Source of the DNA: Chlorokybus atmophyticus
Lineage: Eukaryota; Plantae; Mesostigma and Chlorokybus algae
DNA: 64,000 nucleotides
NCBI GenBank assembly: GCA_009103225.1
Contig: RHPI01002402.1
Location: 653,412 to 717,411 of the forward strand
Direction: 5' to 3'
Every line of letters begins with the position of its first letter. Position 1 is the first letter of the stretch. The notes beneath the pieces were generated by a model that saw only the letters and a list, made by a program, of their open reading frames with translations, was not told where the DNA came from and searched no databases. A program made the position numbers and the translations under genes. Of this stretch, positions 20,272 to 25,196 are shown one piece after another.

Positions 20272-21762
20272 TCCCCCCACTTTTATGGTCGAATGGGCTG
20301 TGACAGCTTAACGATAAGCAGTTTGACTCCTTTGCAATTGCAATGCATATGGATGTTGTAAGCAAATGATATATCGTAATAGCTGCTCATTAATTTCGTA
20401 TATGATTAATCTAATATGTGAGGGTTGGCGATTGGTCGATTGATGACATGTCACTTCTGCGGTTGTAGTTTGGTAATTGAAATGAACACGATTTATATAG
20501 TAATGTTGTAAGGTATGATGTATACACCCTAACATGGTGCACATTGCATATAACATGAAGTCGGATAGGTAATGCATAATCATGCACAGATATGCACACA
20601 CCCACGCATACAATTGCCAAGACAACATGAGCAAGCTCTATTTCACGCATGGTCTAGTTCAGGTGCTCTAAATGTGCTACATGCAAATGCAAGGCGGGCC
20701 AATGAGCAGGCAGCACAATTAATTAATCAACCAACCTGTTGTTACGAAGGCATGTTGGCCCCCCTCTTATCAAAGGGCATTGTGGCCCAAAGTGTGTTAA
20801 CAGTTTGTGAGCAAAAACATGGGCAATCTGAGGTGAATACGGTAGGCCTGTTGTTATAGCTGCCATTCTGCCTCATTGGCCTAACCATTGCAATGCCATT
20901 TCGGCAGGTTGGCGCTTTGAAACCCTTGGGCCGACAGGTTGTGGCGCAGCACATGGGCATGCATGTTGCGAATGGCGCCATGCGTGTGCGAGGCCGTGCC
21001 AATCCACGTGGCGGCCACTTTTGGCGGCAGCGGCCCGCGCATGCAAACTTTGGAGTCCCGCGAAAGCAAGGGGGGAGCGCTGCCAGATTCCAAGTCATGT
21101 CAGCAACGGCTCGGTGCAATGCAAAGGCCGCGCGACGCTGCAATCGACGGTCGCGATGCGACAAAACCAGCAGGCATTGGAATCCTGCTAAACCGAGCAC
21201 TTTTTAGGCCTACTGCGATTCCCTGCCGCAAAAAAACGGAGTTGCTGACCTGCACGGAATCCATCGCCAGCGGGCGGCAGGAATCGCCGCTGCCGTCCAT
21301 TGATGGGGTCATCCGCTATCTCGTCTTCACACTGTTCAATGAACGGTGTTCAGCATGGGAGGCAAAAACCCACCCGCGGTCGGTGCCTTGGCGCTTTATT
21401 CGCAATCCGACAAGCCCGTCGGACGTTCGCCGAAGACCTGGCCCTTTGTTCAGTCCTAACAACGTTAGTGTACCCGCGTATCTTTGTGCAATAATGCAGT
21501 AAATAACGTTCCTTGACAACTTGGACGGCAGATGCTGCGTGGGGCTTTATCAACAAATTGATAAAGTGCCAACTAGGCAAATGCGCCAACTTGGCGCAGG
21601 CGGGCCGATAACGCGGGCGACGGAAGCGGCGGCGAGGGCGTCGTAGTTGTTGGGGAAATCCCCGGCGTCGTCGTAGACGTGTGTATGCGCCTGAGGTGAT
21701 ACTCTGCCGCCGTCGGCAGGTTGGCTGGGCCCCTTGAGAAGTGGCCTGGAGGGAAGCCAGGT

Positions 21763-21771
21763 TTAGGGTTT
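21763..21771 (-). promoter_or_regulatory. Telobox (TTAGGGTTT) with flanking TGGGCC site-II-like motifs
   Basis: Lies about 60 nt upstream of ATG 21829; TGGGCC occurs on both sides. Confidence 0.45.
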
Positions 21772-21828
21772 GGTGGTCTGCCATGGAGCTGGCCTGGGCC
21801 TAAGCCTAGGCCTGGGTGCTATTGGAGC

Positions 21829-24232
21829 ATGGAGCCGGTGCTGAGCAGTAGCCTAGCCGGGGCGCCGTGGCTGCAGACGCGGCCGTCGCTGGACCTTCTG
21901 CGGCAACGGGTTCAGCATGACGGACCATCACGGGCTGTGCACAATGCCCACAGGACTCGGTCCGCTGTGTTGTGCACCCTTGAGATGCCCAGGTATAATG
22001 ACATTTGGAGCATGCCGCACGGTTCACCTTCCCCCCGCCCTCCTCCAAGCACAAAAGCTCCCAAGAAGAAGCTCCCAGAGCGTGCGTATTTTGGTGATTC
22101 GGCTATGCAGGAGCAAGAGGACCAGCACACTCGTCAGGTACGCTAATCTGACTACGAGGGTTTGTCGACACAGTTGTGAGCGTTGCAACCCATTATGAAC
22201 GCTAGGCAGGTAGTTTGCAGTCAGCTGACAGTTGCCTGCATAGGGTTTTGTATTATCTGTTATTTGTCGCAAGGTATTTCTTTCTGTTATATTTTAAGGC
22301 AAGTTGGGCCGAATCTGAGTATGCTATTGCCGTGAGCTGTTTCAGCACTCCACTTGCGCTGCATGTAAACGAGAGCACAGCAACAAAAGATTTCCAGTCG
22401 ATTGCCAGCAAGAATTCACTACTAACGGTGCTTACGGCAGGCAACAAGCGGGCTGGCGACCAGCTCTAGACCGGCAGACCGAGTGAACAGCAGAGGGAGT
22501 TGGGTGGGCGAGGGATATGTGAGATACGTGGAAGACTTGGATGACTTTTTTGCGCTTCCGTCTGTGGAAAAAGAGGCTCCTCCTGGGGAGAAGGAGCATC
22601 GTCGCGATAGACGAAGAATGGACTACAGCTCTGACCTGATAGCAGCGGCAAACGCAGCCACTCAGTTTAGGGAGATGGTGATGGAGGATCTCCGCACCTT
22701 TGTCAGTCATCATGCGATTGCCTTGAGGGGTTACATGCCTACGTGAGTGCCGCAGCCGCATGCATATCAAGATATCGCAGAGCATTCCGTTAGCAACCCT
22801 AACCCAACATGCATTGCATCTTGCAGGCGTGAGTATTTGTGTGATGCGGGTCGGACAGACCTGGTGAGAGCAATACGGCGATTGGGCGGTCCTCTGGTTG
22901 TGGCTACTGCGTTAGGGTTGCGCTGGAGTGCCAACATCATGGATGAAGTCGCCGAGTCAACATCAGGAGTTTGTCCACACCTTCCCACCAGCCATTCCAG
23001 AAGTCGGGGTTCAGGAAGCAAAAAGCCTAGCGTTGGCGCAGTGAAATGTAGAAAGCACACTGCAACAACTTCTGCTGTCAGCTTTACCCCTCAGCACTTT
23101 ACACCACCCACGACAGTGGAGACCATCCTGAGATGTGTGCAGGTATGTGACGCACGATGGTATTGCCACCAGCTGCAACTGTTCTTCTGTTGTGCATGAG
23201 GTGTTGTCGTTTGTGTAGCCTCTTGCTTAGGTGTTTTGCACCGCACCTTCCAACAGCCTGTACATGTTGTAGTGTTGCGGTTTACAACAGAATGTGTCAT
23301 CAACTCCACCTTAACGTGTTTATCTGATACTACTGTGCAGGCGTGCATAGATCAAGGCTTGGTATTCATGGTTGAGCACCATCGCACAATGGGTGCCACG
23401 GATCACTTCTGGACTTTGTGGCGGTTACCCTTGTACAGCGCTCATACAGCTGATGCAGTTATGGTTGAAGCAAAGTAAGTTGCAGGCCATGTATCATTGT
23501 GATGTCTGCCACAAGTTGCAGGGCACATGTATTGGGTAATAAGAAGCTGACACAACCGCATGCTGCAGCTCTTGTGCGGAGCAGTATCCTGACCACTTCG
23601 TCAGGTTAACAGCGTATGACATTGGAAGGCAAGCTCAACAGGTGACTAGCATTTTTTTCTCTCATGCAGATCTGTTGAGAGATATTCGTACCGCAGCATT
23701 TATGCATGCAGTTGCAGGTTCCTGACACAGCAATCTGGTTTAGGTGAGCTACTTGATCCACAAACCAGATGTTATGGATGCAACAGTGGAGGTAGCGGCC
23801 ACCAAGGGTCTCCCTGGCAGCCCTACTACTCCCATGTCACCAGCTATGGCTATCATGGACCAGCAAACCAAATCACGCAAAGATGCTTTGGAGGTATGCT
23901 TCTGGCTCAAAGTCCATACAACCTTGAGGACTGCAAGTTGGCCCTTTGTACACCTGGACCTCCTCACTTGCAACTCAGATAGGATGTTGCTTGTTGAACA
24001 GGCACAGCAGGCGGAACGAAGGAGAGAGGCAGAATCTGCGGCAATTGTGGATGCTGCAGCGTCAACAACTGCCAGAGCTGCAGAGAAATTGGCGTATGAC
24101 TCTGCAGGCAGCCCACCTTCGCCTACGGATGAAAACGGGTTGTACGGCGGCACTATCTTCGCCAACAGGAGGTTGTTGCTGCACGGAAATAAGCAACGAC
24201 GCAAGCGGCGAAGAAATGGACTGCTTCCATGA
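21829..24232 (+). CDS. Putative plastid protein: transit-peptide-like N-terminus, PTST2/3-like helical motif, RbcS-like domain and low-complexity or coiled tail
   Basis: Phase-compatible exons give ...GYMPT|REYLCDAGRTDLVRAIRRLGGPLVVATALGLRW...SAVSFTPQHFTPPTTVETILRCVQ|ACIDQGLVFMVEHHRTMGATDHFWTLWRLPLYSAHTADAVMVEAN|SCAEQYPDHFVRLTAYDIGRQAQQ|VSYLIHKP. This matches the RbcS consensus (WTMWKLP...EY...IR..GFD...Q..SFIVH.P). Confidence 0.8.
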
Positions 24233-25196
24233 GATTGGTGGCAAGGCAACGTTCCAATATCACCAAGTGAGAGTGCTGCAATAAGCTGTCTCCCAAGAAG
24301 ATACAGTTGGCCCGCCACTTTGTACTGTAGGGGGGTTTTGTTGGGTGCCTCCAGGGGTAGGCACACAAAGGAAACCTACCCATAGTTTTGTGTAGTCAGA
24401 TTCTGCATGCAAACGTGACAGCCTGCTGTACGTGCATTACGTACATGAAAGGTGCATGCGTATGTAGGTCATTGCCAGATGCCTGCATGGTTTTATGCAC
24501 GGCCGCTGGGGCACTATACCAAAAGATTTCTTGCAAATTGTATAAGCTGTTGTAAGTCAATGTGAAAGACAAATGTGTGTCGCGTAAAGGTGTGTAGTGC
24601 TCTAGTTTACAGGCATGGTGGAAGGTGAAGTAGTGCTTGTGGCGAGCTTAGCTGCACCGATTGCACAATCCTTGCATACTATAGTATACTACCTGCCAAG
24701 CCCGGCTTGGTAGTCATAGTAGAGTGACTACTGCAGCATGCGCTACCTTAACGCACATAGTGCACAGTGTACGGCTTGTTGAGATGGACCGCAGCATTGT
24801 AGGTACTGATGCCATTGATGCTGACTCGCCTCGACTGGCTCAAGTGACTCAACAAAGAACAAGGTGGAACTGATACTTCGCAGCTGCCTTCTTTGAGAGG
24901 ATGTGCTTACCTGTTCACCTGGCATTTGTGACATAGTGGCCATTGGGTGTAAGTCTGGTGGTGGTCCCCAGCGCCATTGCTCATGCTTGATTTTTTGTTT
25001 GGTTGAGTACAAGCCCATTGGGCGTTGGCAGTTGTGAGTTGCGTAAGAATACGCTAGTCTTCCAGTACTATTCTTGGCTGCCTGCAACCTGCAGCGCCAA
25101 CGTGCAATGCAATGACAATGGTGAATGACCATTCTCATGTAGAGCTATAATATCTGTACAAAGGTGTAGCCATGCATCGAGCTGGAGTAATGCATG

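Follow-up and report, generated by a model that had tools for sequence, protein, structure and literature searches.

A window of 64,000 nucleotides (64 kb; contig RHPI01002402.1, positions 653,412–717,411, assembly GCA_009103225.1) from the genome of Chlorokybus atmophyticus, an early-diverging streptophyte alga, encodes a 504-residue protein that combines a small helical unit with a domain resembling Rubisco's small subunit (RbcS). Judged from sequence comparison, the helical unit is homologous both to the single N-terminal unit of PROTEIN TARGETING TO STARCH 2 and 3 (PTST2 and PTST3) of land plants and to the units of bacterial tandem arrays with 3–11 copies, and the RbcS-like domain has its full length and resembles true RbcS most closely. 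We consider, with a probability of about 50 %, that the protein is an adaptor joining Rubisco to a partner of the helical unit.

The window is eukaryotic DNA with a GC content of about 51 % and short GT..AG introns. Joining the splice sites in the translation of positions 21800–24300 gives a forward-strand gene of seven exons at 21829–24232, and its 504-residue product is 100 % identical to the database entry P0001 in an exhaustive protein search (source name eukprot jgi/Chlat1/7821/Chrsp66S07265, Chlorokybus atmophyticus). Two transcript contigs of 2109 and 2101 nt, one from each of two studies, span positions 21585–24590 and show all six predicted junctions. Two sequencing runs, each from a different study, contained 61 % of the words sampled from the locus, which is approximately the exonic share. 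An earlier reading of this DNA, made without database searches (hereafter the sequence-only reading), had placed a helical motif upstream of the RbcS domain and named RbcS exons on a separate transcript as one of two findings that would speak against a Rubisco-to-starch tether. Since both contigs carry all six junctions, the motif and the RbcS-like exons lie on one mRNA, and the helical unit and the RbcS-like domain belong to one protein from one transcript. The peptide quoted in that reading, GYMPT joined to REYLCDAGRTDLVRAIRRLGGPLVVATALGLRW, is encoded at 22729–22926, where G200 starts at 22729, the codon of T204 is split by intron 2 and W237 ends at 22926.

The quoted motif is the C-terminal two-thirds of a unit of about 60 residues and 4–5 helices (approximately residues 178–239), which starts in exon 2 at nt 22663. 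In the AlphaFold2 (AF2) model of residues 174–241, built with the unit alignment, the unit is predicted to form a compact bundle, made up of one long helix and four short ones (confidence score pLDDT 94). A hidden Markov model (HMM) of 208 units from other proteins, with P0001 and algal proteins excluded, scored residues 183–238 of P0001 at 56.7 bits and the orthologues at 43–49 bits. When all 64 kb of the window were scanned in six frames, the sole significant match was the exon-3 half of the unit (30.8 bits, E = 5e-11), and with the same HMM a second copy was absent from both the protein and the window. The orthologue alignment shows this unit as the best-conserved block of the whole protein, ahead of the RbcS-like domain, with about 25 positions invariant across three orthologue lineages. 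Pfam did not match the motif in the single exons, in the joined 59-residue piece (E ≤ 10) or in the whole protein. PDB sequences yielded no significant match to either exon 3 or the unit profile, so that no solved structure of the unit family was found by sequence, and Foldseek with the unit model gave no matches in the PDB.

The relation to PTST2 and PTST3 was assessed with segments of at most 64 residues each, taken from the supplementary alignments of PMC11772324. In these alignments, every PTST2 orthologue opens its conserved region with a unit-like block, which reads DLETEILEFMKNSEKPGMFPSKKDLIRSGRFDLVERIVNQGGWLSMGWD in Arabidopsis and EDLEEAIYEFMRRSDKPGAFPTRAELVAAGRADLAAAVDACGGWLSLGW in rice FLO6, and every PTST3 likewise opens with such a block. 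Against the unit profile, hhalign gave probabilities of 97.9 % (E = 6.5e-13) for AtPTST2 and 97.1 % (E = 7.8e-11) for AtPTST3, with alignments covering 45–47 columns. An HMM made of array units only, containing no algal sequences, scored AtPTST2 at 41.6 bits, OsFLO6 at 46.7 bits and AtPTST3 at 30.9 bits, while 0 of 2000 shuffles of each PTST segment scored above 11 bits. Direct comparison of the algal unit with cassava PTST2 by BLASTP gave 13 identities in 24 residues (54 %, E = 4e-8). The local BLOSUM62 score of the algal unit is 48–60 against PTST units and has a median of 75 against array units, a comparison that is biased because the array units were chosen by their similarity to the algal unit.

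The sequence-only reading had likened the motif to repeats in the N-terminal parts of PTST2 and PTST3. The likeness stands as that of a homologous unit, supported by the hhalign, HMM and BLASTP results above and by a fold match to a CBM48 cluster described below, but the repeats do not, since the aligned regions of PTST2 and PTST3 show one copy per protein. The consensus quoted there (MP..., VAxxLxL) fits the tandem-array units better, whereas the signature of the PTST2/3 units is …EIxxFMxxxxxPxxFP(S/T)xxELxxAGRxDLVxAIxxxGGW…, and they read FP(S/T)... and GGWxSxGW at the corresponding places. The motif matches PTST2/3 as well as families of the helix-turn-helix (HTH) type, rather than unrelated families alone.

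Both the Chlorokybus protein and PTST2 (FLO6/BGC1) or PTST3 have one copy of the homologous helical unit (about 50–60 residues), located directly behind the transit peptide and ahead of a disordered region, and both are likely plastid proteins of streptophytes. PTST2 and PTST3 end in a coiled coil and a CBM48, whereas the Chlorokybus protein carries the RbcS-like domain and no carbohydrate-binding module (CBM). The layout of the Chlorokybus protein resembles that of PTST2, in which unit, intrinsically disordered region (IDR), coiled coil and CBM48 follow one another, with the glucan-binding end swapped for a Rubisco-type domain. The long helix predicted for the Chlorokybus protein (residues 411–462) lies behind the RbcS-like domain in a low-confidence model, and the coiled coil of PTST2/3 precedes CBM48. 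The last helix of the PTST2 unit is shortened (GGWxSxGW), and the algal unit retains the canonical VAxxLGL helix. The sequence-only reading saw no CBM48, and indeed Pfam yields RuBisCO_small alone in the 504-residue protein; CBM48 (AMPK1_CBM, PF16561) was found neither there nor among the 50 phmmer matches reported below. Our literature search found no description of the unit in PTST2/3 nor of an algal protein in which it is fused to an RbcS-like domain. The N-terminal helical unit of PTST2/3, related to bacterial arrays of the HNH_repeat type, is apparently undescribed. A 2026 study of FLO6 (PMC13475482) expressed the protein 'without signal peptide (1 to 91)'; by alignment numbering, this construct would lose the first helix of the unit (about residues 79–128).

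An exhaustive phmmer search with exon 3 against 1.84 billion representative proteins (E ≤ 0.001) returned 50 proteins. Besides the query's own protein, the single-copy matches were P0028, P0037 and P0049. The array proteins align to no more than the initial ~35 residues of the query, in 3–11 separate stretches with a period of about 61–70 residues. They come mainly from metagenomes and are mostly bacterial, with one from a named member of Chloroflexota and one from Galdieria phlegrea. The consensus of the array unit is YWxDFxNLxxELxxFxxxxGxxGxMPTxxELxxxGRxDLxxAIxxHGGxxxVAxRLGL, and the pattern W..F..L..EL..F....G..G.MPT..EL...GR.DL..AI..HGG...VA..LGL is common to these proteins and the algal unit. 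In contrast to the 3–11 copies of these mostly bacterial proteins, Chlorokybus has one copy in a eukaryotic plastid-type protein. The Pfam model PF18780 (HNH_repeat, 'homing endonuclease associated repeat') was matched by 10 of 51 array proteins (best E = 6e-35) and by 4 of 94 single units, but not by the algal unit. By these profile matches, the unit family sits at the edge of the PF18780 model. In word-indexed protein searches, the region of P0001 that holds the motif returned P0001 alone, and the array-protein alignment returned further array proteins and no PTST. The protein of the red alga Galdieria (P0064, eukprot jgi/Galph1/85) has 746 residues with tandem units and scores 564 bits against the array profile, so that the array type, too, occurs in a eukaryote.

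The fold of the unit seems to be shared more widely. When the unit model was compared by shape with the ESM Atlas, several clusters were returned with TM-scores of 0.65–0.78 over 58–66 residues. They comprise bacterial and phage clusters of PF18780 HNH_repeat (0.65–0.68 over 58–59 residues), a streptophyte AMPK1_CBM/CBM48 cluster (0.70), START/Polyketide_cyc (PF03364) proteins of streptophytes and chlorophytes (0.73–0.78) and a 92-residue streptophyte family that shares the fold. Feature searches of the Atlas gave leads below threshold only. Judging by these predicted structures, several protein families of plants and algae seem to share the unit as a portable module. The unit family is broad and not starch-specific. 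Since the unit recurs in CBM48, START and RbcS contexts, a generic docking role may be proposed, and since units pack in tandem in the arrays, association between units is also possible.

The RbcS-like domain (residues 294–386) matches PF00101 with 80.3 bits, against a cut-off of 27, over profile positions 5–97 of 97. Its best PDB match is the cyanobacterial RbcS 6lrr (E = 7e-21), it aligns without gaps to RbcS of cyanobacterial length, and the closest solved structures are the RbcS of Nostoc and Thermosynechococcus. No CcmM SSUL chain was among its 54 PDB matches. Rather than forming a free-standing subunit, which would have about 110–140 residues after removal of the transit peptide, the domain is embedded in the 504-residue protein. 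In the full-length AF2 model, disorder at residues 1–153 is followed by a helix at 154–193 leading into the unit, which ends at 239, and then by a disordered linker, an RbcS-like fold at 301–383, a long helix at 411–462 and a disordered basic tail. The arrangement recalls the SSUL domains of cyanobacterial CcmM and of the activase-like protein, where an RbcS-like domain sits within a larger scaffolding protein for Rubisco binding, as is predicted for Chlorokybus. Unlike SSUL, the Chlorokybus domain is nearest to genuine RbcS, is present once, in a eukaryotic protein, and has a different module as its fusion partner. With SAGA1 and SAGA2 of Chlamydomonas, only the proposed role of linking the Rubisco matrix to starch could be shared. 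These proteins carry CBM20 and Rubisco-binding motifs and the Chlorokybus protein has neither; Pfam finds no CBM, including the SAGA-type CBM20, in its 504 residues. A candidate for the Chlamydomonas-type Rubisco-binding motif [D/N]W[R/K]xx[L/I/V/A] was rejected, since the sole W[RK]xxL is 'LWRLPL' of the RbcS core and lacks the preceding D/N.

As an adaptor, the protein would dock on Rubisco large subunits (RbcL) through its RbcS-like domain, and the helical unit, perhaps aided by the flanking long helices, would dock a second partner. This partner may be shared with PTST2/3 and the unit-bearing plastid proteins with START domains, or it may be another copy of the unit, packed in the manner of neighbours in the tandem arrays. 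The net effect would be that Rubisco is brought to whatever the helical unit binds.

Several observations weigh against the adaptor. The full-length AF2 model, from an alignment of four sequences, has low confidence (pLDDT 46), and plastid targeting is judged from composition alone. The literature searched describes PTST2/FLO6 as a transit peptide, coiled coils or IDRs and CBM48, and leaves the unit unmentioned and without a role. In a wide VIA-align search against the PDB, the best Z was 4.8 (Slx4 CCD, TetR and winged-helix types), which is not decisive; for models of small helical domains, fold Z values below 5 would lie within noise. The remaining points come from the bacterial relatives. 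Many array proteins have weak summed matches to HTH families (YdaS, P22_Cro, HTH_50, LysR HTH and ARID), and two contain SNF2 domains. Two arrays viewed in context adjoin a downstream gene of the Methyltransf_8/11 type encoding about 175–181 residues (L003:554-5579 and L004:8001-13284), one of them being fused to SNF2, and one array has NmeDI_C and Tn7-like (TnsA, TniQ) genes in its vicinity, a setting suggestive of mobile elements or defence. Since these relatives sit in DNA-related settings and draw weak HTH matches, the unit could bind nucleic acid instead.

Among the alternatives, the protein may be an unconventional Rubisco small subunit or an innate linker like hornwort RbcS-STAR, which we consider unlikely. 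It would occupy the RbcS site, and its C-terminal helix would self-associate and cross-link Rubisco, leaving the N-terminal unit an accessory or regulatory role. The completeness of the RbcS-like domain and its gap-free alignment with RbcS of cyanobacterial length are consistent with this, as is the long helix predicted at residues 411–462. Hornwort RbcS-STAR, which condenses Rubisco via helical C-terminal extensions, gives a precedent (Robison et al. 2026, as reviewed in PMC13655443). Compared by architecture, both are streptophyte proteins with an RbcS-type domain and helical extensions, by which RbcS-STAR gives Rubisco a new interaction. However, the hornwort extension is C-terminal on a normal, abundant RbcS, whereas the Chlorokybus domain follows a 293-residue N-terminal region with a PTST-type unit. 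In the orthologue alignment, moreover, the C-terminal region is poorly conserved and the N-terminal unit is the best-conserved part, and the helix prediction derives from the four-sequence alignment.

As a special case of the adaptor, the unit may be an interaction module of starch initiation, which would make the protein a tether between the Rubisco matrix and the starch sheath, acting via PTST2/3, starch synthase 4 (SS4) or their partners; this is improbable. The pyrenoid of Chlorokybus has associated starch, the unit is homologous to that of PTST2 and PTST3, and the order of unit, IDR, binding domain and helix parallels the layout of PTST2. PTST2/3 are reported to be restricted to streptophytes (preprint 10.1101/2024.10.03.616402), and Chlorokybus is a streptophyte. 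However, Pfam finds no CBM of any kind in the protein, the unit also occurs in START-domain and bacterial or phage proteins and is hence not starch-specific, and the algal unit is less similar to PTST units than to most array units in the biased comparison above. In addition, one orthologue cluster comes from MMETSP and thus probably from a non-streptophyte alga (see below), and PTST2/3, SS4 and MRC are reportedly missing from chlorophytes (same preprint). An extended proposal casts the unit as a module for self- or hub-docking in PTST2, PTST3, START-domain proteins and the RbcS fusion, and holds that in early-diverging streptophyte algae the fusion couples the Rubisco matrix to the PTST2/3 starch-initiation machinery and seeds the pyrenoid starch sheath. 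We regard this as a long shot.

It is likewise rather improbable that the unit is a nucleic-acid-binding HTH, by which the RbcS-like domain would be linked to plastid DNA or RNA, for example by connecting Rubisco or unassembled RbcL with the nucleoid or with rbcL expression. The matches of array proteins to the HNH_repeat, P22_Cro, YdaS, HTH_50, LysR-HTH and ARID models, the SNF2 fusions and the methyltransferase neighbours would fit such a role, together with a weak LysR HTH match of 'hGGfaaVAerLgL', the weak TetR and winged-helix fold matches and the net charge of +3 of the algal unit. For most of the HTH-type Pfam matches, however, no stretch passed singly, the fold matches with Z < 5 are within noise for small helical domains, and PF18780 recognizes only the 4 of 94 single units mentioned above, while no Pfam model recognizes the algal unit. 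In this unit, a small and hydrophobic helix (VVATALGL) takes the recognition-helix position, and the units of PTST2 and FLO6 are acidic, with net charges of −1 and −4. Finally, a chance likeness of short helical segments would agree with the direct pairwise match spanning only 24 residues, but it is a highly implausible explanation of the PTST2/3 similarity in view of the profile scores of 31–47 bits, against at most 11 bits in 2000 shuffles, the hhalign probabilities of 97–98 % over 45–47 columns and the independent fold match to the CBM48 cluster.

PTST2 and PTST3 have a central part in the initiation of starch granules, and a conserved, well-folded N-terminal unit with bacterial relatives adds to their description. 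That a streptophyte alga joins this unit to a full RbcS-like domain leads to the testable hypothesis of a portable docking module with Rubisco as one of its cargoes. If the partner is starch-related, the fusion would explain how the starch sheath is placed around the pyrenoid in the lineage leading to land plants and would offer a compact part for pyrenoid engineering. Coupling of Rubisco to the PTST2/3 machinery would then be a solution unrelated to SAGA1/2 of Chlamydomonas and would give a function to the N-terminal unit of PTST2/3. If the partner is nucleic acid, the fusion would suggest a link of Rubisco with plastid gene expression. Whichever partner applies, the unit merits a family definition of its own.

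Table 1 Features of the Chlorokybus gene and its product, with coordinates in the window.
Feature	Coordinates	Strand	Basis
mRNA (5′ untranslated region, seven exons, 3′ untranslated region)	21585..24590	+	Two transcript contigs from two studies, six GT..AG junctions
Exon 1, coding sequence, residues 1–103; transit-peptide-like N-terminus, predicted disordered	21829..22137	+	Gene model; identical to P0001; pLDDT <50; no Pfam match
Exon 2, coding sequence, residues 104–204; disordered part, then long helix at residues 154–193 (first module helix)	22441..22742	+	Gene model, transcripts, AF2
Module, first part, residues ~178–204; helix 1, short helix 2, 'GYMPT'	22663..22742	+	Unit HMM from residue 183; AF2 of residues 174–241, pLDDT 94
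Intron 2, 84 nt, GT..AG; splits the module within the T204 codon	22743..22826	+	Gene model, transcripts
Exon 3, coding sequence	22827..23142	+	Gene model, transcripts
Module, second part, residues 204–239; REYLCDAGRTDLVRAIRRLGGPLVVATALGLRWS, helices 3–5	22827..22932	+	Unit HMM, AF2 model, six-frame scan, orthologue alignment
Ser/Thr/Lys-rich disordered linker, residues 240–293	22933..23094	+	pLDDT <50; not conserved among orthologues
RbcS-like domain, residues 294–386, exons 3–6 including introns	23095..23767	+	PF00101, 80.3 bits, E = 1e-22; PDB 6lrr, E = 7e-21
Exon 4, coding sequence	23341..23474	+	Gene model, transcripts
Exon 5, coding sequence	23569..23641	+	Gene model, transcripts
Exon 6, coding sequence	23744..23893	+	Gene model, transcripts
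Predicted long C-terminal helix, residues 411–462, including intron 6	23840..24103	+	Full-length AF2, pLDDT 62–75 here, shallow alignment
Exon 7, coding sequence	24002..24232	+	Gene model, transcripts
Basic tail KQRRKRRRNGLLP and stop codon	24191..24232	+	Gene model

A second unit in exon 1 ('EMPRYNDIW…') was considered and rejected, as it has zero HMM signal. The orthologues P0028, P0052 and P0049 likewise carry RbcS. P0028, a PF00101-bearing protein of 562 residues, derives from an MMETSP transcript and has copies in JGI data, and P0049 is a 173-residue fragment from an NCBI assembly. MMETSP transcriptomes hold chlorophytes but are not known to include streptophytes, and the orthologue found there is therefore probably from a non-streptophyte alga. 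The motif (D/E)NGLY is possibly common to the C-termini of two orthologues, with ENGLY at residues 473–477 (24134–24148) in Chlorokybus and 'WDNGLYASRP' in P0028; it was not aligned by MAFFT and may be due to chance, the C-terminal regions being otherwise unconserved. In contig JAANSZ012852940.1 of GCA_024449875.1 (703–1224), the unit and the start of an RbcS-like domain lie in a single uninterrupted open reading frame, and the intron that Chlorokybus has inside the unit is missing from this locus.

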